Below, piece after piece: positions 13,887 through 64,000 of a stretch of DNA of 64,000 nt. Both the position numbers and the translations under genes were made by a program. Origin of the DNA: Macrostomum lignano (taxonomy: Eukaryota); NCBI GenBank assembly GCA_002269645.1, contig NIVC01000126.1, positions 248,001-312,000 of the forward strand, read 5' to 3'. The notes under the pieces were generated by a model, which saw only the letters and a program-made list of their open reading frames with translations, searched no databases and was not told the origin of the DNA. Numbering within the stretch: the stretch's first letter is position 1; every line of letters starts with the position of its first letter.

Positions 13887-16800
13887 CTATCCTATCTGAT
13901 AACTGCCGTTAGCCAAACCATTTGCTCTCCGCTGATTCGAGCCCTCCTGCTCATCAGCTTGCCGGACGCTTTCAGGTTCCTCATCGTCCAAGTCCAAGTC
14001 CATGCCGCTGTTGACGCCATTCATTGCCAAGCCGCCTGGGATTCCGCCAGCGGGCCGGCAGCCTCGTCGCTGATTCTCAATAAATCTCTCCCTAGAAGTC
14101 AGAATCGAGTTGAACGCGAACAGCCTCAGGCAGAGTTCGATCATCTCGCAGAGTGTGAGCACGCTCATGCCAAGATAGAGTCCCAGTATGCCGCCGATGT
14201 CGGACATGAGATCGTACACTTGATAGCCCCAGTTCTCCTCGGTGAGCAGACCCAGGCCGAGGCTGTCACCGACTCGAATTCGTAACGCCAGGAAATTCTG
14301 CGCCACTGTGGTGTCCTGGCTCTCGTCTAGCCGGTTGAACGCTTGATGCAGATGCCAGTTGGTCGCTCGGACGAAGTCCGTGTTGATCGTTTGCGCCGAT
14401 CGTGACGTTCCATTGAGAAAGAACACGTTGGATTGAAGCCATCGTTCGAGCAGCGGCTGGAGAAACTCGCCGGTTGACACTGGCCAAGCGTTCGACATGA
14501 AGCCTACTGAGTAGGTCCTAGTGAGACAGTTCTCTAAGCAGCTCTGCATTCTGGTGTCGTTGGTCACCAGGATGCGAGCCATTCTCAAGCATGTCTCATT
14601 GTCCAACAGGCTCTCAATAATGGTTGGCAGCCGGTAAGTCCCATTGCTGCTCTGGTTGGTGCTGTTGAACACTTCGCTCACTAGATCGATGATGTAGCCT
14701 GGGTCCGGACTGGACGAGTTCAGGTACAAGTTCGACAGGTTGCCCCTGCGATGCTGTTCGATAACTTCTGATCCAATCGGTTTGTTTGGATCCACGAATC
14801 CGCAGTTTTCCACCAGGTATTCCTGAGCAGCCCGAACTCGACAGTCGGTTGGCAATTTCTTGAACTGTTCCAGCGTTGCTTTGCCATCCTTCACCACCAT
14901 GTAGCTTGTGGTGTCCGACGGTCCGGAGGCTCCCGTGTCCAGACACTGCATCTTCCTAGTGTTCATGGCCGTGTACTTTTGATAACGAACGTCTACTATG
15001 GTTTCCTGATTGTTTGAGGCTTCTATTAGAAGACCATTGGTTGGATAGGTGCCTGGGAGGTGAATGAGCACGGCTGCTCCACCGTTCGTCTGCATGTTGA
15101 ACTCGTCGCCTACAAAAATTGAAATAATTAAACTTTGTTTCAAGGATTCGACTGGTGTCTAATTAACGTGCTCAGCGGTAAACGTATCCGACTCTCGCGC
15201 CGTACGACCCCTGGTTCGATTCCGTGCCCGATTGTCGTGCGATTTACAGGCATGAAGGCCATCCCCAAGGCACAGAGAGCGTACATGCCCTGACAATTAG
15301 AAAGTCAGGTCCGTTTCACACCCCCTGTGTGAGCGTGTGTATGAGTGCGTGCCTGAGTACAGTATCCGCACGCTTGAGTGTGCTCAATCCTCAGAATTAG
15401 TTTTGAGATGTCGCCGAAGGCGTTGCGCAAGTGTGCCCGCAGCCGTCCTGCAGGAATTATTTTTACTTAAACGCGATCGATTCGAACGCCTTACCGCTGA
15501 GCTACCCAAAAACCTTCAAACCGTACCTGGCACGTTGGCTAAAGCCGCCGTGATGTCTGGATGCCGGTTCACCGAGTCAGTGAACAGCACCATTCGCAAT
15601 TCGTTCAGATCGTTCACCAAAGTGCCCCGTCGTTGTCGGAACTGATCCAGGCTAAACGTCAGGCAGGATGGATAGGCGGTCAGCGTCATCGCGGAGAAGT
15701 CATTGTGGTCGCAGGCCAGAGAACCGAACGAGCACCAGAGCAGCATCTCTTTGGGATCGAGGGCGAACTGGGAGACTCTCTCCAAGCCGTAGGTGTCTCG
15801 GATGACCAAATCTGTGGGTTTAATGTCTGTCACAATGAGCTTTTTTCGTCGACAGCGAGCGTAAAAAATCGTGAGTTTTAGCTTTGTCGAGTAACTTTGT
15901 CTTCATCTTTTTTGTCGCTAGAGGGTGGTGTAGCCTAGTGATTAGAGCGCCGGACTCACGACTTGAGTCATGAGTCGGGGGTTCGATTCCGGATCCCACT
16001 GGAATTAAATGGCTGCCAGCATTAGCTGGGGTGATTGAAGGCGTGTGTGGCGACCCCCCCCCCCAGTCTTCGGACTGAACAGCCGTACGCAGCCTTCAGA
16101 TGCGCCGCGCAATAGCTGCGGCTGAGCTGTCGGCTGCACATCTGCCGTTATGGCAGGTATAATCAATTAGTATATTATTATACCTTTTTACGTTCTATTT
16201 GATAAAAACTGCAACCAATTTGGCCACGGCTCAGCCTGACGCAGCCGCAGCAATTTTCCATAGACAGCCACCGCTAGCGGCAACCAATTTGGTAAAAACT
16301 GCGAGCTATTTTGCCAGCTTGAAGATAGCAGCTCAATAGCATAACAATAACGATAAAGAATGTTAACAATACATGCACGAAGTCAGAACATTATGTCCTC
16401 AGCATTCAAGCACCGATTGAAGTACGTCTGGGAATGGTTGATCCAGCGCAGGCACTTGAGAGGCGTGATGCAGTTCAGTGCTTGCTGCACTTCTCTCTTC
16501 AGAATGCGCATCCTGTGCTGATGCAGTGTCGCACCTGCTGCAGCAGCCAGTCCAGTATCTGCCAACTCTACCAGTTCGTTCATACGTGGTCACGATGTTC
16601 CTCACTGTCGGTTTCTTCATCCCCATCATTCTGCCAAGCTCTCTCCAGTCGTCGCCACTCCTGTACGCTCTCACGATTCGCTCTCGATCCAGCTGACTTA
16701 TCTTTTGGTACGGCCCACGATTCGCCATCAGAGCAGCTGCTATCTTCAAGCTGGCAAAATAGCTCGCAGTTTTTACCAAATTGGTTGCCGCTAGCGGTGG

Positions 16801-18455
16801 CTGTCTGTGGGAAATTCTATGTCTATGGTCAGGCTGAGCCGTGGCCAAATTGGTTGCAGTTTTTATCAAATAGAACGTAAAAAGGTATTTTATTGTCATG
16901 GACAACTAAAGTAAAAAGGACACTGCACGATGTTAAATCGTGGGAGTTTTAACTTTTTCGAGTAAATTAAGTTCGTCTTAGACTATAGACTATAGTATAG
17001 CATTTTGCAAGCTAGTAGAGACTACGAGCAAGCAATTTAATCCGAGATAGCAAAAACACATGCATTTTGAGCCTCACTGCTAGTTGTCTATGGTAAAAAG
17101 TGTGTCAAACCGGCAGGCAATTTAATCCTTGGAGCACCCATTTAAGCACTGAAATCCATAAACAGCGCTGTCTATGCCGTTCCACTCTCAGTTTTGTCAA
17201 TATGTCAGACGAAAGTGACCAAGCCAGCACCATTTTTGAAGACAGTGAAACATCTCGCAGTCGGAGCGCCCCTGTGCAATATGCTAAGATTAGCGACAAA
17301 AAGCATAGATTGATAATCGACGCTATCGACAGAGGCGATAACAACAGAAGCATTGCCAACTTAGCACGCAGGCAAGAATTCGCACAGGCTGCATCGCTGG
17401 AGATGTGATTATGTAACTTACTGAAGTTTAAACGTACATGTAAAAACTTTTCTGTCGTGTGTTTCTTTATATGCAGGTTTCGTTAAGCGAACTTTTTGCT
17501 GAACCTTGTTCTACGTCGTAACTTTTTCATATGGAGCTTCCTGGTTGGTTTGGTTGGAGGCTTGCATGAAATAAATGGAAAGGCCGAGCAAGATAGTGCT
17601 TAAATGAGTGCATCAAGGATTAAATTGCCTGCCGGTTTGACACACTTTTTACCATAGACAACTAGCAGTGAGGCTCAAAATGCATGTGTTTTTGCTATCT
17701 CGGATTAAATTGCTTGCTCGTAGTCTCTACTGGCTTGCAAAATGCTATAGTAGACTATAACAAATATATATTCTGGTTTAGTGCACCTCCACTTTAAGCT
17801 AATATTGTTAAAACTCAGGGCATTGCTAATTAATTACTATCGGAACCCAAAGACTCAGGTGAGAGGGAGTACCTAATTGAAGGAAGTGCTCCGGGGCATC
17901 ACCCTTTGAACTCAAGCTTTTGTCTCTATATGGCAGAAGAGCAGCGAAGTCAGCGCAACTCACTTGGCAGATTGTACAGACCGTCATCTTCAACCCTGAG
18001 CAGGCTCGTATCCGACTCGTAGTTGCCGAATTTCTCTAACAGATACTGCCGGACGCTCTTATTTAGAATGTCTCTGACTTGTTGAATATCGTCGTACAAT
18101 GGCTTAAATTTTTTATTCAAAGTGTATCTGAACACTGGCTTCGATGTTGTCGAATTTTGGGTCTTGTTTACCAGATGCTGGTCGAATATCTTGCTGATGG
18201 CGAACATCATCAGGTTGCACACGGTAATGTCCGGATAGAGAAACCTGCTGCCTTTGGGATCAATTTTTGTAGTAATTGGTTCGTCGAAGTATTTCACGAC
18301 TAGAGTGACCAGGTGAACGCTGAAGCCCACGAAGGCGCACCCGATGAGTATCAGCCAGCCGATCTGGAAGGCTCTGACTGGATGGTTCAGCTTGTGAAAA
18401 CCATGAGCAGTTGTGCTGGCTGCAAAGAACCTCAGTGTGTCTACTCGCTTCTGTG

Positions 18456-18543
<88 letters not shown>

Positions 18544-18834
18544 AGGCTGCTGCTGCTGAGGCTGAGGCTGCTGCTGCTGAGGCTGCTGCTGCTGAGGCTG
18601 AGGCTGCTGCTGCTGAGGCTGCTGCTGCTGAGGCTGAGGCTGCTGCTGCTGAGGCTGCTGCTGCTGAGGCTGAGGCTGCTGCTGCTGAGGCTGCTGCTGC
18701 TGAGGCTGAGGCTGCTGCTGCTGAGGCTGCTGCTGCTGAGGCTGCAGGACGTGCCTAGACTGAGACGGAATGCCAACTATTGCTGCTGTTGCTGCTGCAG
18801 CAGCGGATACGGAATGGGGTGGCGCCTGTCTCAT
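13887..18834 (-). CDS. DEG/ENaC (ASIC/FaNaC superfamily) channel subunit, ~792 aa, 3 exons
   Basis: Exons 18834-17964, 15811-15527 (alternative acceptor 15826), 15109-13887, phase 1/1, total 2379 nt. Motifs: pre-TM1 STTAHGF, post-TM1 YPDITVCN, WCSFGSLACDHNDF..YPSCLTF, TM2 DLMSDIGGILGLYLGMSVLTLCE with GxS filter. Confidence 0.93.
15168..15430 (+). mobile_element. tRNA-derived SINE, family A (ENaC intron 2)
   Basis: GCTCAGCGGTAAACG A-box, GGTTCGATTCC B-box, body colinear with 2944-3230. Confidence 0.7.
15923..16144 (+). mobile_element. tRNA-derived SINE, family B, CORE region deleted
   Basis: GGTGTAGCCTAGTGATTAGAGCG..GGGGTTCGATTCC head; 3' ~120 bp almost identical to 59400-59520. Confidence 0.8.
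16183..16885 (-). mobile_element. Non-autonomous Tc1/mariner-type DNA transposon (internally deleted)
   Basis: ~150-bp imperfect TIRs (16183-16333 / 16734-16885), TA on both sides; retains HTH start MANRGPYQKISQLDRERIVRAYRSGDDWRELGRMMGMKKPTVRNIV and C-terminal ITPLKCLRWINHSQTYFNRCLNAEDIMF. Confidence 0.85.
16998..17747 (+). mobile_element. Second non-autonomous Tc1/mariner-type element
   Basis: 153-bp TIRs (16998-17150 / 17595-17747), TA-flanked; internal remnant YAKISDKKHRLIIDAIDRGDNNRSIA resembles the HTH start of the neighbouring element. Confidence 0.8.
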
Positions 18835-23900: not shown

Positions 23901-26534
23901 CCCCAGCTCCCTTGCCCTTTACCCTCCCCTAATTTTTAGTCTTACCCTCACCCTTTACCCTCCCCTGTCTCTCTTACACTTTACCCTCCCCTATCTCCCA
24001 TTGCACTTTACCCTCCCCTATCTCCCATTGCACTTTACCCTCCCCTATCTCCCATTGCACTTTACCCTCCCCTGTCTCCCATTGCACTTTACCCTCCCCT
24101 ATCTCCCATTGCACTTTACCCTCCCCTATCTCCCATTGCACTTTACCCTCCCCTGTCTCCCATTGCACTTTACCCTCCCCTATCTCCCATTGCACTTAAA
24201 TGATTGACAGGTACAGGTATAACATCTGATAGTTTCCTGTTTCAGTTAGTGAAGACTTGGCTCTGATATTGTATTATTTCCAGACTAAAGCCATCAGATA
24301 CATCGACAGGAAGGCAGCTATGCTAATCTTAATCTTCGTCTGTTTTTGCTTGGTTTTTTGTTTAGGTTTCTGTTGCTGAGAAACCGATTAATTTAGTCAA
24401 TTGCGTGCCAGCTTTTGCGGCTTCTATAAATTCTAGGATTTAATATAAACTCGCAGGGTGAGATTTTTCAGTGTTGAGATTTCCAGGATGAAATTCTTTG
24501 GGTCAAAATCCGAGGTTGAGATTTTCAAAGTGAGATTCTCAGCGCAAGATTACCAGGGTGAGATTATCAAGGTAATAAGATTATCAGGTTGAGATGATCA
24601 AGGTGAGATTATAAATGTGAGATGATCAAGGTGAGATATCAAGGTGAGATTATCAGGGTAATAAGATCATCAGGTTGAGATTATCAAGGTGAGATTAGCA
24701 GGGTGAGATTAGCAGGGTGAGATTATCAAGGTGAGATAACGGCAAACGCGCGAGTTCTGAAGCAATTACATTGTAGATAATCGTTGAGGAATTCCTTAAT
24801 CCAGAACATTTCTATGCAAAATCATAAAGCAATAAAAAATATCAATCGACGATATTTACTGGCTGAGAAATCAAAGCCTTAAAAATAAAACTTAGATTTT
24901 TGCTAATGAGATTGTTCAGAAACGAGTCAAAACTTTCACTGCTTTTTAGTCAGTGTCAGGGATTACCAAAAATAACACGTGGATTGGATTGCTCACTGTA
25001 AGATTTCCTGTAAAGATTTCAATTCAACCATGTCATTGAAACAAGAAGAGAATAGGGCAGCAAAGACAGTTCCAATGGAATTTCTTTCTTGCTCTTTCTA
25101 AATTATTTCTAACTCTAATTTCTAATTTTAACTTATACATACGAGTCTAGAGATTATAGATACACGAGTCGAAAGATTAAATCTATATAATACATTTTTA
25201 AAGTTTGATTAGATATGCGACTCTAATAAATTGATTAGACGATTTGAGATTAGATTCAGACGATTTGAGATTAGATTTAGACGATCTGAGATTAGATCAG
25301 CTGATTTGAGATTAGGTCAGGCGATCTGAGATTAGATCAGCTGATTTGAGATTAGATCAGCCGATTTGAGATTAGATCAGCCGATTTGAGATTAGATCAG
25401 ACGATTTGAGATTAGATTCAGACGATTTGAGATTAGATCAGCTGATTTGAGATTAGATCAGCCGATTTGAGATTAGATCAGACGATTTGAGATTAGATTC
25501 AGACGATTTGAGATTAGATTCAGACGATTTGAGATTAGATCAGACGATTTGAGATTAGATTCAGATGATTTGAGATTAGATTCAGATGATTTGAGATTAG
25601 ATCAGCTGATTTGAGATTAGATCAGACGATTTGAAATTAGATTCAGACGATTTGAGATTAGATTCGGACGATTTGAGATTATATCAGACGATTTGAGATT
25701 AGATCGATTTGAATTCAGAATGTATAATTTAATTTTCTTGCTCACCTGAGCAGCCTGATGAAGCTGGTTAATTCGATGCGCAGCAGACGCAGCCGCCCTC
25801 TTCTGCAGCCGGCGTCGCAGAGCAAAGAAGATGCTGATGTAGAGCGATATGATTATCACAGCCGGTATATAGAAACTCCCCATAGCGCTGAAGAACACAT
25901 AGCCTTTCTGTTCTGGTAATTTGCATTTTCCCATTGAAATTTCCGTAATATTATTAATATTATCAATAGTATTAATAGTAGTATTAACCGTAGGATATTC
26001 TTTATTCGCCGAGTTCCAACTAAGTGTCGGACCAATGCTAATTAGTCCGCTCAAAAAGAAAATTGCAAAAATCATTAATAGCACTGTGGTTGTTGTTCTC
26101 TTGGTGGCGTAGGCAATGGGGTACTTGATAGCGCAATACCTGTCCACTGCTATGCCGGCTAGGTTTAGAATACTCGCCGTGCAAAAGAATATATCAGATG
26201 TAGTGAACGCGGCGCACAGCATCCAGGGTAGCAACCACTCTTCATCAGTGACGTACAGCTTCACTTGCAGAGGCAGTACCAGGATGCCAACAGCCATGTC
26301 TGCGCAGGCCAGACTAACGATCAGGAAATTCTGCGCTTGACGCAGAAGACGCGACGTGAGCACGGCCAGAATGACCAGGGCATTACCGCAAATGGTCATA
26401 GCAATGACTATGGTCATGAGACCGGCGGTTAGCCATTTCTCATAGTGGAAATTGTCGGGCATATTTGAAGAGCTATTTTGAGCAGACTGCAGACTGCAGG
26501 TAGACGTCATTGAATTTGGCCCTTTATTTACCAT
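20915..26534 (-). CDS. Biogenic amine GPCR, type-1 tyramine (Oct-TyrR/TAR1)-like, ~420 aa, 2 exons
   Basis: Exons 26534-25746 and 21388-20915 (phase 0). TM3 [21 protein letters not shown] with Asp3.32; TM5 [10 protein letters not shown]; [30 protein letters not shown] closely follows the tyramine-receptor [22 protein letters not shown] signature; NPVIY in TM7. Confidence 0.9.
21911..22480 (-). repeat. 27-bp minisatellite arm (GGGAGAGTAAAGTGCAATGGGAGATAG)
   Basis: About 19 units plus a unique head; reverse complement of 23700-24196. Confidence 0.92.
22876..23448. repeat. 33-bp minisatellite (TTCTACTCTCACTTCTACTCTCTAGTTAGTGTG)
   Basis: About 17 units; gives the [14 protein letters not shown]. 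Confidence 0.95.
23700..24196 (+). repeat. 27-bp minisatellite arm, inverted relative to 21911-22480
   Basis: CTTTACCCTCCCCTATCTCCCATTGCA units, degenerate on the left. Confidence 0.9.
25232..25710. repeat. ~20-bp minisatellite (GATTTGAGATTAGATCAGAC)
   Basis: Starts ~35 nt after the GPCR donor; a related degenerate GAGATT repeat lies at 24430-24728. Confidence 0.9.
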
Positions 26535-27044: not shown

Positions 27045-28415
27045 ATACCGAAGAAGGCAGGGACAACGCGGAAAGAAGACCACCGCGGGATCTCGCTGAT
27101 GTCCGGCACCGCGAAGCTCTTCAACCGGCTGCTGATCGATCGTCTGCAGTCGGTGCTGGACCCGTACCTGCGGTACGAGCAGAACGGATTCCGGCGGCAA
27201 CGCGGTACAGTGACACAGATCCTCGCACTCCGCCGTGTCATCGAGGAGGCGCGCATTCACCAGTCTATGCTGATCATTGTCTTCGTTGACTTTCGAAAGG
27301 CGTTTGACTCGGTGTTGAGAGCCGCGCTTTACTTTGTCCTTCGAGTCTACCGGATACCCCAGCAGCTAATTGACGCTGTCATGGCGCTGTATTGCGATAC
27401 TCGAGCTGCTGTGGTGACGGCGGACGGCCTGTCTGACCTGTTCGACACTTCATCAGGAGTTCTGCAGGGTGACACTCTTGCGCCGTTCCTCTTCGTGCTG
27501 CTCCTGGACTGGGTGCTTCGGACTGCACTCCCCTCGGCTAACGACGGCTTCCTGCTGCCCAGACGCATCGGTCGCCGCCACGGAGAAAAGCGCCTAAGCG
27601 TGCTTGGCTACGCCGACGACCTCGCCCTCCTGTCCTCGTCCGTTGAAGGTGCCCAGCGCCAGATCGACAGGTTGGTCGAGGTGGCATCGAGCGTCGGTCT
27701 GGTTGTCAACAACCAGACAACCAGACCTGAAGACCGAGGTGCTGACTGTGCCGGCCGACATCCCAGCGGACCTGACGTGCCGCGGCGCAGACGGGCAGAC
27801 GACCAGACTCGCACGCTGCCAGCGGTTCACCTACCTCGGCGGTCTGGTGCCTCACGTGGGTGAAGACCTCCGGCGGCGCCTGGGCGGCCTTCCGTTCAAT
27901 CCGGGCCGTCGTCCAGTCCGAAGCGCTGCCCGACCGCCAGAGGGCTCGGCTGTGGCAGGCGGTGGTCGAAACCGTCCTGCTATACAACGCCGAGACGTGG
28001 ACGCTGACGGCTACGCTGGAGCGGCAGCTGAACTCGGCGCACCCAGGGCTGCTCCGTGCGACCTTTAGAGCTGACGAGAGCGTCGGGACCGAGGCCCTGT
28101 ACGATTGGGCCAAGCTGCAGCGCCCGTCCATCATCCTGCGCCGGCGGTGACTTCAACTGGCGGGCCACGTGATCTGGGCCGAGGGCTACTGCCCCCAACC
28201 TGTTCAGGACGTCCTGCTGCTCACCTTGCAGGGCCCGCTGAGGCGGGGTCAGGCCCGAACCCGTCGATACGTGGACTGCCTGCTGTGCGACGCTGGGGCG
28301 CCCGATATTGCCAACGGAGCGGACTTCATTCGCTCCCAGGCTCTGCGGCGCACCATCTGACGCACCCTGCTCTGTGAGTTTGATTGCGGGGCCGCGTATT
28401 TTGTTGTTGTTGTTA
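27045..28415 (+). mobile_element. 5'-truncated, frameshifted non-LTR retrotransposon (RTE-like RT)
   Basis: IPKK..HRGISLMS, EQNGFR, FVDFRKAFDSV, GVLQGDTLAPFLF, GYADDLAL, FTYLG, LLYNAETW, LQLAGHV; frameshifts near 27715 and 27880, in-frame TGA at 28148; ends in (TTG)n tail. Clade assignment is inference. Confidence 0.92.
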
Positions 28416-30295: not shown

Positions 30296-33200
30296 TCAAG
30301 GTGAAGCTTCCAGATCATCGTCCGGGGAGTGAACGGGGATTCCGTCCACCATCCCGACGCCGCCACCACCTGTGAGAGCCCCGCCGATGCTTGGCAGCTC
30401 GGGCAGTCGGCTTCTCAGCGAAGGTCCCGAGTTCGCGTGCTGCTGCAGTCTAATTCTGCTTTGATTTGGTCGCTGATTGCTTCTGCTTGTGCCTGCTGTG
30501 CCTGCTGCTGCTGCTGCTGCTGGCTTTTTCTGATTGAAAGAGTTTCGACTTTTACGTTGCGATTCTTGCGATGGGATTCTGGAACGATTCCCGACTGATG
30601 TGGCTTCCGTAGGCCTGCTGTTGCTATTGCTTTTAGTTGGCAATTGATTTTGCTGCTGTTGATGTAGCGGAGAGGCTGGACCGGCTGAACTGCAACCGGA
30701 ACTCGCTAGAGCAGCCTGAATTATTGATTATAACTGCTCAGTGACACATTAGGTAATTCAGCTTTCGTCATACTCCCAGATTAGCTATTCACTTGATATT
30801 TACCCTCTATGATCAAACCGCCAATCTATGACTGATAAAAAACATACTTTTTGACGGGCGTAAAAGGCCACCCTATATGACCGAAAACAAAGCCAGCCTC
30901 TAGGACAGATCAAAAAACACACACTACATTCATATGATCAATAGAAAACCACCCTCTATGACAACGACCGATATTAAAAGGCATTCTCCATGAGCGACAG
31001 GAAAAAGCATTCTCTTTGACTGATCGAAAAAACACCCTCTATGACTAATAGTAAAAACAAACCCCTATGACCAATTTCCAGTGCCACCCTTTGTGACCCA
31101 CAGTAGAAATCAGGTTCTATGACCGACAGTAGAAACCAGCCTCTATGACCGACAGTAGAAATCAGGTTCTATGACCGACAGTAGAAACCAGCCTCTATGA
31201 CCGACAGTAGAAATCAGGTTCTGTGACCAACAGTAGAAACCAGCCTCTATGACCGACAGTAGAAATCAGCCTCCATGACCAATCGTAGAAAAAAACCTCT
31301 ATGACCGTCAATAAGTACTCGTGCCACCCTCTATGACCGATAGAATAAATCACCCTCTATGAGCGACAAAAAGCCGCTCTCTACCGAGCTCACCAGCGGA
31401 CTGGCGGGCTGAAAATTTATGACGTCATCGTCAACTGCTCCCGGCTCTCTGCTGGCATGCCGTGGCTTCTCGCCCACAACTGACGATGGCGATTGAACCG
31501 GCTGACCCGGCGGCACGTCAACGATCACGTGATCCATGGACTGGACAGGGGAGAGGGTTATGGCTGTGTGTACATTTTCTGTAGTTTCCACCGGTTGTAC
31601 TTCAGTCTGTATATTTCTGTTTGTCTGTACTTTCACTCTGTAATACTGTCCGTCTGTCTGTAGTTCTGTCTGTAATTCTGTTTATCTGTAACTTAGTCTT
31701 GTCTGTAATTCTGTCTGTCTGTAATTCTGTCTGTCTGTAATTCTGTCTGTGTGTAATTCTGTCTGTCCGTAATTCTGTCTGTCTGTAATTCTGTCTGTCC
31801 GTAATTCTGTGTGTAATTCTGTCTGTACTTCTGTCTGCCTGTAATTCATTCTCTCCTGCATCTCATCCAACATCCAAACAGGTAATTACAGCAGCCGTGA
31901 CAGCCACTCCCATCGCCTACAGACGGGATTCCGCTTTCGCGATCGATTTGAAAATCCTCGGACAGCGAAACCGGCCGCCTCTGCTGGACAGACGACGCCA
32001 GCTGACGTTGCCTTCTTTGGCGTCGATGTTCTCGACTGCCTGCGCTGTAGCCGACCGCTCGCCGCCGCCGCCCGCCGGCCGCCGCCGCCGCGCCCATCGC
32101 GCCGCCGAAGCCGCTGCAGCTGCTCGCACTTCCCTCCTCTCGACGTTTCCGACGATGGCTGTGCAGTTCTTCTTGAGTCTGCTGCTGCGATTGCCAGTAA
32201 TTTTACTCGCTTCAGATTCCATCGATTAAACGATTCCCAATTCCCATAATTCCAGCTTCCCAAATCCATTCCAGCTTCCCAATTCCAATCCAAGCTTCCC
32301 AAATCCAATTCTCAGCTTCCCAAATCCAATTCCAGCTTCAAATCCCAATTCCAGCTTCCCAAATCCCAATTCCAGCTATCCCAAATCCCAATTCCAGCTT
32401 CCAAATCCCAATTCCAGCTTCCCAAATCCCAATTCCAGCTTCCCAAATCCCAATTCCAGCTCCCAAATCCAATTCCAGNNNNNNNNNNNNNNNNNNNNNN
32501 NNNNNNNNNNNNNNNNNNNNNNNNNNNNNNNNNNNNNNNNNNNNNNNNNNNNNNNNNNNNNNNNNNNNNNNNNNNNNNNNNNNNNNNNNNNNNNNNNNNN
32601 NNNNNNNNNNNNNNNNNNNNNNNNNNNNNNNNNNNNNNNNNNNNNNNNNNNNNNNNNNNNNNNNNNNNNNNNNNNNNNNNNNNNNNNNNNNNNNNNNNNN
32701 NNNNNNNNNNNNNNNNNNNNNNNNNNNNNNNNNNNNNNNTAGAAACCAGCCCTATGACCGACAGTAGAAATCAGGTCTGTGACCACATCACTAGAAACCA
32801 GCCTCTATGACCGACAGTAAAATCAGCCTCCATGACCAATCGTAGAAAAAAACCTCTATGACCGTCATAAGTACTCGTGCCACCCTCTATGACCGATAGA
32901 ATAAATCACCCTCTATGAGCGACAAAAAGCCGCTCTCTACCGAGCTCACCAGCGGACTGGCGGCTGAAAATTTATGACGTCATCGTCAAACTGCTCCCGG
33001 CTCTCTGCTGGCATGCCGTGGCTTCTCGCCCACAACTGACGATGGCGATTGAACCGGCTGACCCGGCGGCACGTCAACGATCACGTGATCCATGGACTGG
33101 ACAGGGGGAGAGGGTTATGGCTGTGTGTACATTTTCTGTAGTTTCCACCGGTTGTACTTCAGTCTGTATATTTCTGTTTGTCTGTACTTTCACTCTGTAA

Positions 33201-49779: not shown

Positions 49780-52700
49780 CTATGCGCAGAACGAAGACGA
49801 AGCAGAGCCGCCAACGGACGAGCCGTCAGAGTTACCGGCAGCTGCGGCAAGTGCTGCGGCCGCGTCTGGGCCCAGGGCATTGTTCTTCCTGGCTAGGCTC
49901 ACGATGAGGTCCTGCGCGATCGGATTTGGGGGGCGTGGAGTTATGGACTTCCTTGTATGGGCCATGGACACCTATCTTAACTGGGCCATGGACACCTATC
50001 TTAACTGGGCCATGGACACCCATCTTAACTGGGCCATGGACACCTATCTTAACTGGGCCATGGACACCTATCTTAACTGGGCCATGGACACCTATCTTAA
50101 CTGGGCCATGGACACCTATCTTAACTGGGCCATGGACACCTATCTTAACTGGGCCATGGACACCTATCTTAACTGGGCCATGGACACCTATCTTAACTGG
50201 GCCATGGACACCTATCTTAACTGGGCCATGGACACCTATCTTAACTGGGCCATGGACACCTATCTTAACTGGGCCATGGACACCTATCTTAACTGGGCCA
50301 TGGACACCTATCTTAACTGGGCCATGGACACCCATCTTAACTGGGCCATGGACACCTATCTTAACTGGGCCATGGACACCTATCTTAACTGGGCCATGGA
50401 CACCCATCTTAACTGGGCCATGGACACCTATCTTAACTGGGCCATGGACACCTATCTTAACTGGGCCATGGACACCTATCTTAACTGGGCCATGGACACC
50501 TATCTTAACTGGGCCATGGACACCTATCTTAACTGGGCCATGGACACCTATCTTAACTGGGCCATGGACACCTATCTTAACTGGGCCATGGACACCTATC
50601 TTAACTGGGCCATGGACACCTATCTTAACTGGGCCATGGACACCTATCTTAACTGGGCCATGGACACCTATCTTAACTGGGCCATGGACACCTATCTTAA
50701 CTGGGCCATGGACACCTATCTTAACTGGGCCATGGACACCTATCTTAACTGGGCCATGGACACCTATCTTAACTGGGCCATGGACACCTATCTTAACTGG
50801 GCCATGGACACCTATCTTAACTGGGCCATGGACACCTATCTTAACTGGGCCATGGAAACCTATCTTAACTGGGCCATGGACACCTATCTTAACTGGGCCA
50901 TGGACACCTATCTTAACTGGGCCATGGACACCTATCTTAACTGGGCCATGGACACCTATCTTAACTGGGCCATGGACACCTATCTTAACTGGGCCATGGA
51001 CACCTATCTTAACTGGGCCATGGACACCCATCTTAACTGGGCCATGGACACCTATCTTAACTGGGCCATGGACACCTATCTTAACTGGGCCATGGACACC
51101 CATCTTAACTGGGCCATGGACACCTATCTTAACTGGGCCATGGACACCTATCTTAACTGGGCCATGGACACCTATCTTAACTGGGCCATGGACACCTATC
51201 TTAACTGGGCCATGGACACCTATCTTAACTGGGCCATGGACACCTATCTTAACTGGGCCATGGACACCTATCTTAACTGGGCCATGGACACCTATCTTAA
51301 CTGGGCCATGGACACCTATCTTAACTGGGCCATGGACACCTATCTTAACTGGGCCATGGACACCTATCTTAACTGGGCCATGGACACCTATCTTAACTGG
51401 GCCATGGACACCTATCTTAACTGGGCCATGGACACCCATCTTAACTGGGCCATGGACACCTATCTTAACTGGGCCATGGACACCTATCTTAACTGGGCCA
51501 TGGACACCCATCTTAACTGGGCCATGGACACCTATCTTAACTGGGCCATGGACACCTATCTTAACTGGGCCATGGACACCTATCTTAACTGGGCCATGGA
51601 CACCTATCTTAACTGGGCCATGGACACCTATCTTAACTGGGCCATGGACACCTATCTTAACTGGGCCATGGACACCTATCTTAACTGGGCCATGGACACC
51701 TATCTTAACTGGGCCATGGACACCTATCTTAACTGGGCCATGGACACCTATCTTAACTGGCCATGGACACCTATCTTAACTGGGCCATGGACACCTATCT
51801 TAACTGGGCCATGGACACCTATCTTAACTGGGCCATGGACACCTATCTTAACTGGGCCATGGACACCTATCTTAACTGGGCCATGGACACCTATCTTAAC
51901 TGGGCCATGGACACCTATCTTAACTGGGCCATGGACACCTATCTTAACTGGGCCATGGACACCTATCTTAACTGGGCCATGGACACCTATCTTAACTGGG
52001 CCATGGACACCTATCTTAACTGGGCCATGGACACCTATCTTAACTGGGCCATGGACACCTATCTTAACTGGGCCATTGACACCTATCTTAACTGGGCCAT
52101 GGACACCTATCTTAACTGGGCCATGGACACCCATCTTAACTGGGCCATGGACACCTATCTTAACTGGGCCATGGACAACTATCTTAACTGGGCCATGGAC
52201 ACCTATCTTAACTGGGCCATGGACACCTATCTTAACTGGGCCATGGACACCTATCTTAACTGGGCCATGGACACCTATCTTAAATTGGCCATGGACACCT
52301 ATCTTAACTGGGCCATTGACACCTATCTTAACTGGGCCATGGACACCTATCTTAAATTGGCCATGGACACCTATCTTAACTGGGCCATGGACAACTATCT
52401 TAACTGGGCCATGGACACCTATCTTAAATTGGCCATGGACACCTATCTTAACTGGGCCATGGACAACTATCTTAACTGGGCCATGGACACCTATCTTAAC
52501 TGGGCCATGGACAACTATCTTAACGGGGCCATGGACACCTATCTTAACTGGGCCATGGACACCTATCTTAACTGGGCCATTGACAACTATCTTAAATTGG
52601 CCATGGACACCTATCTTAACTGGGCCATGGACACCTATCTTAACTTGGCCATTGACAACTATCTTAAATTGGCCATGGACACCTATCTTTACTGGGCCAT

Positions 52701-55700
52701 GGACACCCATCTTAACTTGGCCATGGACACCCATCCTAACTAAGCCATTGATACCGATCCTAACTGAGCCATGGACACATCCTGTTCGTCATGGACACCC
52801 TTCTTGTCTGAGCCATGGACACCCTTGTCTGAGCCATGGACACCCAAACTGAGTGAGACAGGCATACATACATGTAAATCTCACAGAAGACAGTCCACAC
52901 AACAAAAATATACCTGTATCTCTGCCCGTTTATGATTAATCTCTTCCTGTCGAAACCAGCTGCTCATCTCCAGCTGGAAATAGTTGCGCGTAAACTCGCG
53001 AACTGGCCGTTTGAAAAACAGCTCAGCGTAGTGCAGCACGTACGGCCCGCAGTCCACAGTGTTGGGCTGCAGCGGCACACACGGACAATAGCCGCGTATT
53101 GTCTCCTTGTCGAATACTTTGGGACCTTTCATTGATCTCTTTTTGATGTCCCACTCGACTTGCAGGTATCTGCAGTGATTTATTAATCAAATTAACTTTT
53201 ACTGAATACGTTTCGAATTGATACTGCAATCAACCGCTGCAACAGCCCCCACTCAGACACTGCAACAGCCCCCACTCAGACACTGCAACAGCCCCCACTC
53301 AGACACTGTAACAGCCCCCACTCAGACACTGCAACAGCCCCCACTCAGACACTGCAACAGCCCCCACTCAGACACTGCAACAGCCCCCACTCAGACACTG
53401 CAACAGCCCCCACTCAGACACTGCAACAGCCCCCACTCAGACACTGCAACAGCTGTTACAGTGACCAAGCAAGCTCCGAGAAAGAACACACAATGTCACG
53501 TGACTCACTCTCTAATAGCCAGCACGTTCGGACTTCGGGTGCTGCCCATCAAGCTGTCGAACATGAGCACGCACGGCATTCTAAGCGTGCCGTCGCTGGC
53601 CATTCGAACGTCGAACGGCAGCAAGCTGTTGACTTGAGCCTCAGCGCTGCCTGTATAATTCACCATGCCAACCATCCAGGGAAAGCAGATGACGGCTAAG
53701 AACCAATGACAATTCTCATTGATAGGAATGAGAATAAAGTCCTTAGTGAATAAATCAACTTTTCTAGTCCACTTGGCAACTGTCTCGTGCCGACGGATAG
53801 CCAAGGAAGCGGCTGATTCGTCTTTCCCAGGCGGCGGGTCCAGTTTCTGACTGAGCCGTTTAAAAAAGAAACAATTAAATATGTGCGTACTCTTGCGCTG
53901 TTCCGGCGTTAGCATCTCGTGGTACATGTACTTTAAATAGAAATCTATTGCCACGTCGTTCAGGTACTCGCACGGGTTCAGGCACATCAGATCCGCGTTC
54001 GTGATTGTTATGCCGTTTGTGCCGCCAGGTGAGTAGCTGAACTTCTCAATAACCTGACCGGTGAGGCGGGGCGGCGGCTTGCTGTTGCTGCTTGAGGTGG
54101 TTGTGTCAGCGGCTCCTGACGATGTCGGAGCCGATGCTGATGTTGCTGTTGACAACTGGCGCTGGTCCTGAGACGACTCGCCCTGAAGAATTTCGTTAGG
54201 GAAATCCAGAGTCTTCAGTTCCCTTCCACAGATTCTTCAGTTCCCTTCCACAGATTCTTCAGTTCCCTCCCACAGATTCTTCAGTTCCCTCCCACAGATT
54301 ATTCAGTTCCCTTCCACAGATTATTCAGTTCCCTTCCACAGATTCTTCAGTTCCCTTCCGCACAGATTCTTCAGTTCCCTCCCACAGATTATTCAGTTCC
54401 CTTCCACAGATTATTCAGTTCCCTTCCACAGATTCTTCAGTTCCCTTCCGCACAGATTCTTCAGTTCCCTTCCGCACAGATTCTTCAGTTCCCTTCCACA
54501 GATTATTCAGTTCCCTTCCAGATTATTCAGTTCCCTTCCAGATTATTCAGTTCCCTTCCAGATTATTCAGTTCCCTTCCAGATTATTCAGTTCCCTTCCA
54601 GATTATTCAGTTCCCTTCCAGATTATTCAGTTCCCTTCCACAGATTCTTCAGTTCCCTTCCGCACAGATTCTTCAGTTCCCTCCCACAGTCTTCAGTTCC
54701 CTCCCAAAGATTCTTCATTTCTCTCCCACAGATTCTTCAGTTCCCTTCCACAGATTCTTCAGTTCCCTTCCACAGATTCTTCAGTTCCCTTCCACAGATT
54801 CTTCAGTTCCCTCCGACAGATTATTCAGTTCCTCCCACAGTCTTCAGTTCCCTCCCACAGTCTTCAGTTCCCTCCCACAGTCTTCAGTTGCCTCCCACTG
54901 AGTCATCGTTTCCGATTCTTAACTAATTTCTCACCTGCAGAGACGATGGCTCAATCGCAGAGGCGTCAAATTGCTGGGACGCGGTTCCATTACCAACAGA
55001 CGAGTTCTGCTGCTTGTGCTTCTGTTGCACAAGAAGACCAATAGCCAGGTTGGAGTTCGCCACCTTCTGATACAGTTCGGCAGATTTAGCAACAGAAGAA
55101 GCAGACGTTGCAACAGCGGAAGCAGACGATGCATTGCTGGAACTAATTGCTGCTCCAGCTGTTGAAGAGCTGCTGTGGAGCCGCTGTAAAGTTGAAGACA
55201 TTGCCGGTGCCGAAGCTTGTTGTTGCGGCAAGCCGAGCAGCTCGTTGAAGAATCCCTGCTGGCAATGATCCAGCATGCCTCTAGCCGATACTTTATTCAA
55301 GTTTTGCAAATCGAAATCAAATTTAGCCTGGGACTCGGCCTTCTTATCCGTATAGAATGCGAATAATTTTCTTAGCTCGTCTTCACGCTCATTATCGGAC
55401 ACCAGCACGATCCACTTCTTGCCTAAATCGCGGGTCTCGGCGGCCGACAGGGTGCCCGGCTGCAGTCCGGCCTCCGAGCAGATTCGCCGACTGAACTCTG
55501 TCGATTTCAAGCGAAACGCTACGAAACAGGTTGGCTCGATGGCGAACGACACTTTGCTGATCTGGGCGTGGTGCAGGTGAATCTGGGCGTACTCTACTTC
55601 AGCCTCCTCTTCTTCATCGTCATCGTCATCGTTGTCGGCCATGTCGTCGTAGTCGTCGTCTTCTTCTGAATCGATGACGTCATCAGCAAATTCGTCGTCG

Positions 55701-59258: not shown

Positions 59259-59520
59259 GGGTTGTAGTCTAGTGGTTAGAGCGTCGAACTCACGACTAAT
59301 AGGTCGGGGGTTCGATTCTCAACCTACTCGGAACAATTTGTGTCCTTGAGAAAGACACTTAACTCTGAATTGCTTCAGTTCACCCAGCTGTAAAATGGGT
59401 GCCAGCTGGGGTAATGAGGGTGTGTGGCGACCCCCCCCCCAGTCTTTGGACTGAACAGCCGTACGCAGCCTTCAGATGCGCCGCGCAATAGCTGCGGCTG
59501 AGCTGTCGGTTGCACATCTG
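59259..59520 (+). mobile_element. tRNA-derived CORE-SINE (family B), full length
   Basis: A/B boxes GGTTGTAGTCTAGTGGTTAGAGCG..GGGGTTCGATTC; central GTGTCCTTGAGAAAGACACTTAACTCTG..TTCAGTT..CTGTAAAATGGG resembles the MIR CORE consensus. Confidence 0.85.
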
Positions 59521-59786: not shown

Positions 59787-60449
59787 TTATGGCATCAATT
59801 TCAACGAGGGCTTAGCAATTACAGCCAAAGCCAAAGCCGACGATATCAAACCAAAGAATCCTTGGGCTCCAGGCGACAGTCGAACATAGTTCAAAGATAC
59901 TACTGGTAGGAATAGATCGCAGATATTCTTAGCAGTATCGAGCAGCAGTGGACGGTCGCGCAGCGCTCTAGACAGGCCGCCAGACGCCTGGCAATAGTTA
60001 CTAATATCGTAAGCGTCGCGTGTCAACCCTAACAGAATGGACAATAGCCAGAACCGATTGCTAATTGAACTCCATTTGGTTTTATCAACTTGAGCCAAGC
60101 CTACTCGACCAACCCATAGCCAATGGTCAATCAGTAAGAATATTGCCGATGCAATCCTAGACATTGTAATGGTGAATCGGTGTACATCGTTTTTAATATG
60201 CAGACTTCGCAAAGCAGCGTAGATTGAATCGGCGCTATTGCCGAGTCGCAACAGCTTTCTAGCTGTGCTCAAATGAAGCTCTAATCTGGTTAGCTTAACT
60301 ATCAGCTCCTGTCTAGCTCGAAGTCCATCTAATCCGCCTAATCGTTTCACTTCGAGAAGGTGCGCCAACAGACGGCTGGCATATTGCACCAAACGGAACA
60401 GTTTATCGCGGAAAGCTGTCTGACGAATTAATATTAATACTTTCTCCAT
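59787..60449 (-). CDS. PEX11: Peroxisomal biogenesis factor 11, 220 aa, intronless
   Basis: RDKLFRLVQYASRLL, LSTARKLLRLGNS, FLLIDHWLWVGRVGL, SNRFWLLSILLGLTRD, LLDTAKNICDLFLP, GFFGLISSAL; ATG at 60449 (the track start at 60488 is a GTG). Confidence 0.93.
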   Translation of the reverse strand: MEKVLILIRQTAFRDKLFRLVQYASRLLAHLLEVKRLGGLDGLRARQELIVKLTRLELHLSTARKLLRLGNSADSIYAALRSLHIKNDVHRFTITMSRIASAIFLLIDHWLWVGRVGLAQVDKTKWSSISNRFWLLSILLGLTRDAYDISNYCQASGGLSRALRDRPLLLDTAKNICDLFLPVVSLNYVRLSPGAQGFFGLISSALALAVIAKPSLKLMP

Positions 60450-63161
60450 TCTTTGATGCTTATTGATGAAGAAGTTGAGAAACTGCACTGTGGTCTAGAC
60501 GGACCTGGCAGATGCTGTAATTGCCAGATGGCATCGAAGATTTAAGCTACAAACAGCTTAAATCAGGAGCAAAAGAATGAGGCCATATACTTTGCTATAT
60601 TTATTAGACCTAGAGCACTTTGTAAGAGAAAAAACAGTGTGGCAATAGCAAAGAACCTTAAATGTAAAAGCATGGTTCTGCTTTGCTCTTACATGGCTAT
60701 TTTAGCATGTAGCATACTTTTCTGCAGTCTATATAGGCTTGTGTAGTATAAGCTTATAGACTAGTAATTAAAAGGCTTATTTTCTTATTATAAGATCTAG
60801 ATAAACAGTTAGTTGTATTACACAATTTAAACTGATACATAACTAGTAATTGTGTACAATGCTAGCAACAAATATTCAAGATTGGATATTTTACTATCTA
60901 GTTGTACTACTATAAGACTCAACAACTATATACTTTGTAAAAGCTAAAAACTAAGGCTTTAAGGTTAATTGTTAATTGCAAATTGTATTGCCACAACATG
61001 ATAGTAATGAGTGGTGCTAATAGAGAATTCCACTAATGTTTTAGGCCTTTTAGTTATATGAAGGGTATACTATACAAAAGTTTTGGCAACTTGCCTTTAA
61101 CACTAATTTTTAGTATAATGGATTTAAACCTTAAAAATGGAAAATTTCATTACTAATCAGTAGTAATTTTATGTTTTCATATAGTCATAGATGGGTAAGA
61201 ATGCAAAAAATTCAATAGAAAGCAGTTATTTTATATCAGTTTTCCTACTAGATTGAATCAATTAGAACTAGCCAACACTATCATTGATAGCCCTCACTCT
61301 GAAAGGCCAATTATATCTATGACCAAGTAATAACATTATGATAATATAGAAGACTTTAATCCAAATATCATTATTGCTTTGATAAGCAAATAACATTTGG
61401 CAATTAAGATTATTCCTTATGACCAATGCAACAGTGTTGCTATTTTTAATACCATTGATAATTATAAAAAAAACTTGACAAAATAATCTCTAACAAAACA
61501 AAATTTTCCACAGTGGAATATTTTAAGAATAGTAATAAACATCTTGTGCTTAAAAAGGGGCTATGCATTTAGGGTTACTATTACAAGCATTTGCTCAAGT
61601 TTGTCCCCACTGAAATTTACAAATGCATATATGCAAAGGGTAGCAAAGTGGACCAACTTTATGGAACCTATAAGGCTAGTTTCTTTATCCCATAGTTTTG
61701 GTTAGGATTGCCAAAAATCATCTTGCTAAGTACCTAGACTCATTCTTTTAAATTCATATAATGGCTATATTATATTTATATAGCTAGTTAGCCAATGTAG
61801 ACCATATGTTTGAACCTTGTCAAATGTGCAATTTAATAAAAATTATAACTAGCTACTGCTGCTTATAGATTATTGAATCTATTGAATCTAAATTATAGAA
61901 TATTGAATATAATCTATAATCTATATTGAATACATACTGAATATATATATATTAAATATTATTGAAACATTAAAAACTTTATGGAGTATAAAATAATTGA
62001 AAAATATTTTATAAAGTATTTTAATGACTTTAATCTATGTAATTTTTATAATATATCCTGCATTCTTGAAAATTATCTTTTAATTATTTAGTCAGTACTT
62101 ATTTAGTAGTGATTTCCTTCTTGCTGTGATACTTATTGTATATACTTTGCTAATATAGTTTTACTATATATTAAGTCCTATTGTATTTCAAATATGAATG
62201 GGCCTTTTTGTGATAGGGATTGTCAAGGCTATTAGATTAGCCTAGCTTATCCACTTATTTAGTATCCCTAATAATTTTAACAGGCTCTATTATTTTGACC
62301 TTGCTTGACTAGCTTTAATTAAAATTTAGTCCTATCAATATCTATATGATTTATATTTTATCTAATGACTAATGCTAACAAATAAGATCTTTGACTTTAA
62401 AGATTGGAAAAAGGGTTTTTTGTAAGTACCAAGATACAATATTGCATTCAAGGTCCAATTTTAGGATGCAATTTAGATAGTCAAGATGTCATATAGCATC
62501 CATGACCAAGCCTATGTTTTTTTGCTAGTACTAGGATACAAAATTGTATCAAAGATCTAATTTGAAGATGCAATTTTTTAAGCCAAGATTGCTTTAAAGA
62601 ATAGCTCTTAAGAATAGCTATGGAATTTTTATTGCACAAAAAATAAACCAAGGTTAGAAAGAATTATATAATATTTTTTTTTAATTTTAGGCCCCTTACC
62701 TATAATCCTATGCTAGAAATACAAACTAATTTGACAATGTATTTAATAGATAAGATCTTAATTTAATTGTTATTATTCAAGTTTGAATACAAAAAAAGCT
62801 TATTGAATAAAAAACTAAAAGCTACTCAAAGCTAGAATGGCTTTTTAAAAGATTTTGGGCAAATCTTAGACTTAGGCTTAGGCTTAGGGTGGCAGGGCCT
62901 ACTAATAATTTTAATAATATACTAAACCCTTGGCCTTATTTGGCAATTTTAATATTAGGCCTAGAGTTTAGCCTTTAGGTATAGATAGAGGGCCTATCTA
63001 GAAATTTTTTTTTGTGTCCATTTTTATATAGAATGACCTTTATGTACTTTAACTTGTTTGCCTATTTTTCTTTTGCTTTTTAACCTATTTTAACTTTGTA
63101 CTTCCTAGGTTAAAAATATATATATATTTGAACAATACTATGCATAGCCATATATTCTGGG

Positions 63162-63493
63162 TGTTGTGGGTTTCGTTACGATAATTCCGTAAATAGTTTT
63201 CTAGAACTTTCTACCACTTGTTATAACACTCTGTTGTTTCCAGAATCTTCTCTGCGCCTCCCCCGCGGGCTATCTATGAGAACTTTCTAGAAAGTTCTCC
63301 CACTCGCTCCCCAGGCTATAAATAGAACCCCCGCGCGGTGCATACACTCAAGCACCTTTCCAGTATTTAATAATACTGCTGTTACAAATATACGCTTATC
63401 CAGTCGACTGCCAAGTGCTCTTTTCGGCGCTATACTTACATTTACCAACACTGCAATTGGAATCTCTGTATTCGTTACTTCAAGAATACAACA
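63162..63493 (+). mobile_element. 5' LTR of a Ty3/Gypsy retrotransposon
   Basis: TGTTGT..ACAACA inverted termini, TATAAAT at ~63317; followed by PBS-like TGGCGTCGCAAGCAGGATC at 63503. Confidence 0.8.
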
Positions 63494-63592: not shown

Positions 63593-64000
63593 ATGCCCGA
63601 AACGATGCAAGACGAGGATATAATCAGCCTCCTACGGCAGCAGATGGAAGAAGAGCGCCAACAGCGGAACGCTGACCGGCAGATGATGCTCGACCTCATT
63701 CGGTCTCTAAAGCCTGCAGCGGACCAGTCCCAGGCTGCAGCTTTGCCGACGCATGTGACGACGTCGACTCCGAGTTTCTCGCCATTCGACGCCACGTCCG
63801 AGCTCTGGCCCGACTACTTGGCCAGATTCTGCACCTTCACGGGCGCGAACTCCATACCCGACGACAAGAAGGCTCGGGTGTTCCTGACGAACCAGTCTCC
63901 GTCTGTCTACAAGCTTCTCTCAAACTTGGCAGCGCAGCAGACGCCGCGGAAGGAGATCAACCAGCTCACTATGGACGAGATTGAGAAGTTCATGGAAGAA
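63593..64000 (+). CDS. gag: Gypsy (Mag-like) gag N-terminus, runs off the window
   Basis: Open 136 codons: MPETMQDEDIISLLRQQMEEE..PSFSPFDATSELWPDYLARFCTFTGANSIPDDKKARVFLTNQSPSVYKLLSNLAAQQTPRKEINQLTMDEIEKFMEE. Absent from the ORF track because it has no stop. Confidence 0.88.
   Translation, partial: MPETMQDEDIISLLRQQMEEERQQRNADRQMMLDLIRSLKPAADQSQAAALPTHVTTSTPSFSPFDATSELWPDYLARFCTFTGANSIPDDKKARVFLTNQSPSVYKLLSNLAAQQTPRKEINQLTMDEIEKFMEE

Follow-up and report, generated by a model that had tools for sequence, protein, structure and literature searches.

A CpG-free intergenic block upstream of PEX11 in Macrostomum lignano, probably a footprint of germline DNA methylation and deamination

Directly upstream of the PEX11 gene on contig NIVC01000126.1 of Macrostomum lignano (assembly GCA_002269645.1) lies a block of AT-rich, non-coding intergenic DNA from which the dinucleotide CpG is completely absent. 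We analyzed this block within a stretch of 64,000 nucleotides (hereafter, the window) and in two further contigs of the same assembly that carry it. The scarcity of CpG persists in three diverged copies of the locus; newly arising CpGs are too few, paired TG<->CA changes are seen, C>T changes are raised, and the co-duplicated gene and its 3' flank are spared. The block is probably the footprint of germline 5-methylcytosine (5mC) directed at repeats and at an intergenic domain, followed by deamination; both methylation as the cause and whatever targets the domain are what we infer from these sequence patterns.

The CpG-free interval, delimited by CpGs at 60535 and 63174, extends from 60537 to 63173 (2,637 bp); no other CpG gap of the window is as long. 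It includes 12 nt of a long terminal repeat (LTR), whereas the block proper, the intergenic DNA that lay upstream of PEX11 before the insertion, occupies positions 60537–63161 and has no assigned strand. Given the base counts (C = 353, G = 376; GC 27.6%), 50 CpGs are expected, or approximately 48 if this number is scaled to the CpG observed/expected ratio (o/e) of 0.96 in the AT-rich non-tandem part of the window, and with 48 expected, the probability of finding none is about 1e-21. The deficit is confined to the domain, o/e in the flanks and in the AT-rich background being approximately 1: non-tandem 500-bp segments of the window have o/e between 0.86 and 1.16 in all GC classes, including GC<0.35, with at least seven CpGs in each. 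The remaining CpG gaps that reach about 500 bp or more are, throughout the window, tandem arrays built from units without CG. A second long gap (49934–52524; 2,590 bp) was considered as a comparable desert and rejected, as it is a 24-bp satellite. This satellite (49958–52778; 117 copies, 97% identical) lies inside the span of a called Ulp1/Peptidase_C48 gene and produces long spurious open reading frames (ORFs) on both strands.

The composition of the block is peculiar beyond CpG. TpA has o/e of 1.07, compared to 0.80 in the AT-rich background, which amounts to a surplus of approximately 90 dinucleotides over the background expectation; within 60721–60780 alone, 12 TpA are opposed to six ApT. 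CTAG is approximately ten times denser than in the background, with 21 occurrences in the 2.6 kb of the block against five in 6 kb. Relative to the same background, TpC (0.61) and GpA (0.80) are low, whereas GpC (1.95), CpC, and GpG are high, and CpT is at 1.26. Base composition is strand-symmetric, the block shows no tandem-repeat structure, and its sole internal repeat is a weak one, formed by two 72-nt copies, 76% identical and 102 nt apart (62416–62589, no strand assigned). The CpG, TpA, and CTAG figures agree with the original prediction, which had claimed that there is no CG between 60535–36 and 63174–75, that CG is regularly found in the other AT-rich stretches, and that TA and CTAG are conspicuous, with exactly the above counts of TpA and ApT. 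Its general claim also holds, as the block is a strongly non-random desert of CpG, and the animal genome harboring it is otherwise without CpG depletion in unique DNA.

PEX11 is present three times in the assembly, with 99% protein identity, and three contigs (NIVC01000126.1, at about 297.8–318.4 kb; NIVC01000814.1, at 224.9–245.6 kb; NIVC01001613.1, at 41.4–62.1 kb) carry the block directly upstream of it. The sequenced M. lignano line features redundancy and hidden polyploidy, and its assembly, Mlig_3_7 (accession prefix NIVC), is a draft with redundant content (PMC5730564), which the presence of three PEX11 loci fits. We denote the copies as L001, L002, and L003; L001 is the window stretch reversed, running 6.4 kb past the window end, and a window coordinate equals 70450 minus the L001 coordinate. 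Pairwise identity of the block copies is 93–96%, and they contain no CpGs in L001, none in L002 (7467–9913), and three in L003. The CpG-poor domain of L002 outside its private insertion comprises approximately 3.7 kb, with eight CpGs against 83 expected. Since the junctions between the block and PEX11 were assembled independently on three contigs, contamination and chimerism are excluded.

Each copy also has an insertion of its own, L001 carrying an LTR element, L002 a segment of 1.4 kb (6177–7570; CpG o/e 0.39), and L003 a 640-bp element (5308–5947). Those of L002 and L003 lie in or beside the CpG-poor domain. The L003 insertion has inverted ends of approximately 100 nt and resembles a miniature inverted-repeat transposable element, a short non-autonomous DNA transposon. 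Sequence identity among the copies is mosaic. No differences separate L001 from L002 in the final ~520 columns of the block alignment, and the two share an identical stretch of ~1 kb that spans the PEX11 promoter and reaches through the 5' half of PEX11 (from about 9400 to 10480); farther downstream, L002 matches L003. Such mosaicism may have arisen by gene conversion or by recombination between the copies.

In order to obtain the mutation spectrum, each change private to one copy was assigned to the lineage of that copy. Non-CpG C>T changes are approximately three-fold more frequent in the block (0.0232 per site-lineage) than in the PEX11 3' flank (0.0079), and T>C changes are ~two-fold more frequent (0.0088 versus 0.0046). 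Transversions are equally frequent in the block (about 0.007) and in the flank (0.005–0.008), and thus the raised C>T rate is not caused by misalignment, which would inflate transversions as well. The equilibrium GC content derived from the spectrum is 0.289 for the block (actual value 0.281) and 0.371 for the flank (actual value 0.371), that is, each of them is at its own mutational equilibrium.

The copies also allow us to follow the fate of new CpGs. CpG-creating transitions in the block are approximately six-fold too rare: only one T>C change at TpG is observed in 630 site-lineages, while 6.2 are expected from other contexts (P = 0.014). Clean TG<->CA doubles are found at columns 2149, 2238, and 2851 of the alignment A1 and constitute the commonest class of double changes in cleanly aligned sequence; about 0.4 such doubles would be expected if CpG were an ordinary dinucleotide, and about three if a new CpG decays fast, half of the time back and half of the time onward. 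Column 792 reads CA/TG/CG across the copies, and column 954 reads TA/CA/CG, the ancestral state of the latter being ambiguous. Two more apparent TG/CA sites, at columns 335 and 1175, were dropped, as they adjoin gaps or poorly aligned sequence. The tally fits the fast-decay model: of the 6.2 CpGs made, one is still CpG, three to four have been converted, and the rest have reverted. Judging from how many CpGs are present and how fast they are created, and hence from small counts, CpG decay in the block can be roughly placed one to two orders of magnitude above that of other cytosines. CpG is still being purged from the block.

Outside CpG, C>T changes are fastest at CpA (0.032). With respect to the preceding base, the rates are 0.036 for TpC, 0.030 for CpC, and about 0.015 for ApC and GpC, that is, approximately two-fold higher after a pyrimidine (P = 0.012). 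In none of the three copies do C>T or G>A changes form strand-coordinated runs (P = 0.34, 0.26, and 0.54 in the runs tests).

The co-duplicated neighbor behaves differently. Among 24 ancestral CpGs of the PEX11 3' flank, there are four losses in 72 lineage-sites, and among 40 ancestral CpGs of the coding sequence, four losses in 120 lineage-sites; overall, 92–97% of CpGs per lineage have been kept here, and C>T is low. Over the 10 kb downstream, transitions between L001 and L002 affect 0.031 of CpG sites versus 0.012 of non-CpG sites. Thus, CpG is nearly as stable as other sites in the co-duplicated flank, which argues against a genome-wide CpG effect, and the sparing of both PEX11 and its flank argues against a duplication-triggered process. 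The 3' flank also contains a tRNA-like segment of 66 nt (59259–59324, plus strand), which is kept in all three copies, was called by neither ARAGORN nor Rfam, and is possibly a short interspersed nuclear element or a tRNA pseudogene.

As to the boundaries, the original prediction had described sharp edges at the PEX11 5' end and at a CpG-rich LTR; the left edge stands, whereas the right one is an artifact of the LTR insertion and not a property of the process. On the left, the PEX11 coding sequence (59787–60449, minus strand; a single exon encoding 220 aa plus stop; Pfam PF05648, E = 4e-42) exactly matches the gene called in the assembly on this contig and lies immediately downstream of the block. 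It contains 38 CpGs against 34.5 expected (o/e 1.1). The proximal boundary is formed by the PEX11 5' region (60450–60536, minus strand), where the CpGs at 60500 and 60535 do not vary among the three copies (9914 and 9949 in both L001 and L002; 9908 and 9943 in L003), so that the block begins 51–86 bp upstream of the PEX11 start codon. On the right, the first CpG (63174) sits inside the LTR; hence the sharp edge there reflects a recent insertion and is secondary. Past the inserted element, CpG-poor DNA resumes, with two CpGs in ~370 bp (L001 1844–2224).

The inserted element is a young, apparently intact LTR retrotransposon of the Ty3/gypsy type. Its 5' LTR (63162–63493, plus strand) is 332 bp long (TGTTG...CAACA) and contains 15 CpGs (o/e ~1), as does, in proportion, the element as a whole (o/e ~1), which occupies L001 2225–7288, corresponding to window coordinates 63162–68225. 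The target-site duplication CTGGG is located at 63157–63161 (no strand assigned), with the second copy beyond the window, at about 68226–68230; it reads CCCAG in the L001 orientation, and L003 has the empty site, where CCCAG occurs once. The gag-pol ORF starts at 63593 (63593–64000 inside the window, plus strand), is intact (1,420 aa), and runs to about 67855 (L001 2595–6857, minus strand of L001); the RVT_1, RNase H, and integrase domains are found in all relatives. The proteins closest to the polyprotein of the element, 64% identical, belong to the snail Batillaria attramentaria and to contigs of marine metagenomes, and no M. lignano protein was returned among the matches.

Two further features of the locus point to CpG-specific mutation. 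The two LTRs of the element differ at three positions only (63413, 63425, and 63473 in the window versus 2305, 2293, and 2245 in L001), and all three differences are between CpG and TpG or CpA. As CpG sites make up ~10% of the LTR, this would happen by chance with probability of about 1e-3 or less. The other feature is provided by tandem arrays, which constitute ~27% of the window. Twenty-four out of 30 array consensus units lack CpG, and the total of eight observed CpGs against 36 expected corresponds to o/e of 0.22 (P = 2e-8), whereas CpA (1.41) and TpG (1.32) are enriched and GpC (0.89) is normal. It is due to these CpG-poor arrays that CpG o/e of the entire window is 0.675, while that of unique DNA is near 1.

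Taking these observations together, the block may be seen as old non-coding intergenic DNA in a sharply bounded domain, where C>T changes proceed far faster than in the neighboring gene, roughly 10–100-fold at CpG and about three-fold at other cytosines. Dense germline 5mC set by the DNMT1/DNMT3 system and its subsequent spontaneous deamination would convert CpG to TpG or CpA, part of which would be further converted to TpA. In the long term, this would bring the domain to its own mutational equilibrium of about 28% GC, no CpG, and excess of TpA. Repeats generally, such as the young LTR element and tandem arrays, would be subject to the same process, while PEX11 and its flank would be unmethylated in the germline. 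The block would then be one footprint of methylation directed at repeats and heterochromatin, and not the result of one-off hypermutation. M. lignano has been reported to keep both DNMT1 and DNMT3, unlike planarians and parasitic flatworms, and to have low overall 5mC, and the genomic methylation pattern has been stated to be undescribed for free-living flatworms (PMC11292947, PMC9246332, PMC10658182). Low overall 5mC would be consistent with methylation limited to DNA that has already been stripped of most of its CpGs.

Several observations weigh against the methylation–deamination explanation or demand additions to it. TpG (1.05) and CpA (0.98) are not in excess in the block (1.10 and 1.15, respectively, in the background), and so an extra assumption, further decay to TpA, is required. 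The three-fold increase of non-CpG C>T and the bias toward a preceding pyrimidine are not explained by CpG methylation alone. Other AT-rich stretches of the window keep their CpGs. The comparative tests each rely on few events, with P of about 0.01, and gene-conversion mosaicism among the copies blurs the assignment of changes to lineages. Finally, CpG deserts were compared within the window, with tandem repeats masked. The path from CG via TG/CA to TA suggested in the original prediction is visible between the copies in the CA/TG/CG and TA/CA/CG columns. New CpGs are scarce, CpA is the fastest non-CpG context, and it is TpA, not TpG or CpA, that is in excess in the block, which makes this path plausible. 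The targeted methylation or repeat-mutating system proposed there fits the CpG-only LTR differences and the CpG-poor, TpG/CpA-rich arrays, whereas repeat-induced point mutation (RIP) in the fungal sense is not supported.

We consider it improbable that C-to-T editing by an analogue of RID/DIM-2 or by an AID/APOBEC-like deaminase, triggered by duplication or by a former mobile element, has produced the block. Such editing would account for the three-fold increase of non-CpG C>T with the highest rates at CpA and after pyrimidines, for an AT- and TpA-rich product, and for sharp domain edges, and three block copies more than 90% identical would be a suitable RIP substrate. The RIP indices, which the original prediction had proposed to compute, diverge: TpA/ApT is 1.11 in the block and 0.86 in the background, exceeding the RIP threshold (>0.89), whereas (CpA+TpG)/(ApC+GpT) is 1.28, as in the background (1.25), and does not fall below 1.03, as RIP would demand. 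Moreover, PEX11 and its flank, co-duplicated at equal or higher identity, are spared, C>T and G>A are not coordinated by strand, and the spectrum is that of an equilibrium, not of a burst. RIP machinery is not known from animals. The former mobile element itself, the "old element" of the original prediction, is unproven: transposable-element hallmarks, that is, terminal repeats, a target-site duplication, coding remnants such as ORFs, or additional copies, were found neither in the window nor in the three loci, including a search for terminal inverted repeats at the block ends and a BLAST comparison of the block with the window for a second copy.

It is also unlikely that methylation is not involved at all, and that the block reflects a regional regime of mutation and fixation (easier strand opening in AT-rich DNA, little GC-biased gene conversion, late replication) and/or selection against CpG in a functional region upstream of PEX11, such as a matrix-attachment or regulatory one. 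This agrees with the block and the flank being each at its own equilibrium GC, with the position of the block next to the PEX11 promoter in all three copies, and with the two-fold increase of T>C in the block. However, non-tandem stretches of the window that are equally AT-rich keep CpG at o/e near 1; divergence is faster in the block than in the flank, and hence the block is not under constraint; and the CpG-only LTR differences together with the TpG/CpA-rich, CpG-poor arrays point to CpG-specific mutation at the locus. Furthermore, unmethylated genomes are not known to lose CpG completely.

Even less probable is that foreign, organellar, or mobile-element DNA arrived CpG-free and too recently to have regained CpGs, although the deviations of the block in TpC, GpA, CpT, and GpC and its frequent CTAG do extend the signature beyond CpG. 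The block exists as three diverged copies, each joined to PEX11, and its composition is reproduced by the present substitutions, which still remove new CpGs. Its ORFs do not exceed 73 aa under the standard code or 88 aa under codes 4, 5, and 9, while codes 14 and 6 yield longer stop-free stretches, which lack any Pfam match; origin of the block as a nuclear mitochondrial insert or from a ciliate or a mycoplasma was therefore rejected. Neither tRNAs nor RNA families were detected by ARAGORN and Rfam, and the records of phages and plasmids contained nothing similar, a search that did not extend to genome collections of eukaryotes and bacteria. Thus, the possibility of contaminant, organellar, or symbiont DNA, named in the original prediction as its potential refutation, did not hold, given the three PEX11-linked copies and no sign of donor genes. 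Chance or an assembly artifact is extremely improbable: the redundancy of the draft assembly noted above is all that speaks for it, compared to the probability of about 1e-21 and identical junctions with the CpG-free block, assembled independently on three contigs.

A more far-reaching scenario, that of a germline genome defense in M. lignano, is also conceivable, but we deem it rather doubtful. Such a defense would mark repeats together with certain intergenic domains while leaving gene bodies unmarked, and would be mutagenic enough to erase every CpG and raise C>T at all cytosines, either via dense CpG and non-CpG methylation or via a recruited deaminase, thus being an animal counterpart of fungal "defense by mutation" of the RIP type or of the MIP type (methylation induced premeiotically).

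The remaining part of the window contains exons of an amiloride-sensitive sodium channel (13887–18834, minus strand), a rhodopsin-type G-protein-coupled receptor (25617–26534, minus strand), and a reverse-transcriptase fragment (27099–27863, plus strand). An assembly gap of 261 N is located at 32479–32739; its surroundings at 31.0–31.9 kb and 32.7–33.4 kb are near-duplicates with matching arrays, and may represent an assembly duplication.

While this kind of footprint is already known, the host is an animal whose methylation pattern is undescribed, and flatworms are commonly regarded as having lost DNA methylation. The CpG-free domain beside a CpG-normal gene, the LTR differences restricted to CpG, and the CpG-poor, TpG/CpA-rich minisatellites point to methylation of repeats and heterochromatin-like DNA instead of gene bodies, which, if true, would be unusual for a protostome. 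In addition, the three-fold redundancy of Mlig_3_7 can be used for measuring local mutation spectra.

Among known systems, the block may be compared to germline 5mC decay, as observed in the bulk DNA of vertebrates, in methylated transposons, and in mosaic invertebrate methylomes with bimodal CpG o/e. The shared features are domain-limited transitions from CpG to TpG/CpA, repeats being affected as well (CpG-only LTR differences and CpG-poor, TpG/CpA-rich arrays), and the presence of DNMT1 and DNMT3 reported for the host. On the other hand, depletion in the block is complete (none of ~48 CpGs), compared to o/e of about 0.2 in mammals; non-CpG C>T is raised as well; and methylation is here deduced from sequence. 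Besides, in most invertebrates the methylated compartment consists of gene bodies, whereas here the neighboring gene body is not depleted.

Fungal RIP (RID/DIM-2 of Neurospora) and the RIP-like CpG-context (TCG) patterns reported in some basidiomycetes likewise leave sharply bounded, AT- and TpA-rich non-coding relics of C>T changes, and CpA is the fastest non-CpG context of the block. However, the block demonstrates neither dependence on duplication, nor a lowered CpA+TpG index, nor strand-coordinated runs; its evolution is gradual and at equilibrium, and the host is an animal, with no known RID. The footprints of AID/APOBEC on retroelements are similar in the excess of C>T and G>A and in the preference for C or T before the changed C, but in the block the strands are hit equally, changes are not clustered, retroelement features are absent, and CpG-specific extinction is not an APOBEC signature. 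Finally, scaffold/matrix-attachment regions and vertebrate "CpG deserts" are, like the block, AT-rich, CpG-free, non-coding, several kb long, and situated beside a gene. Yet vertebrate deserts lie in globally CpG-depleted genomes, whereas the background here has o/e of about 1, and therefore the block requires a local cause.

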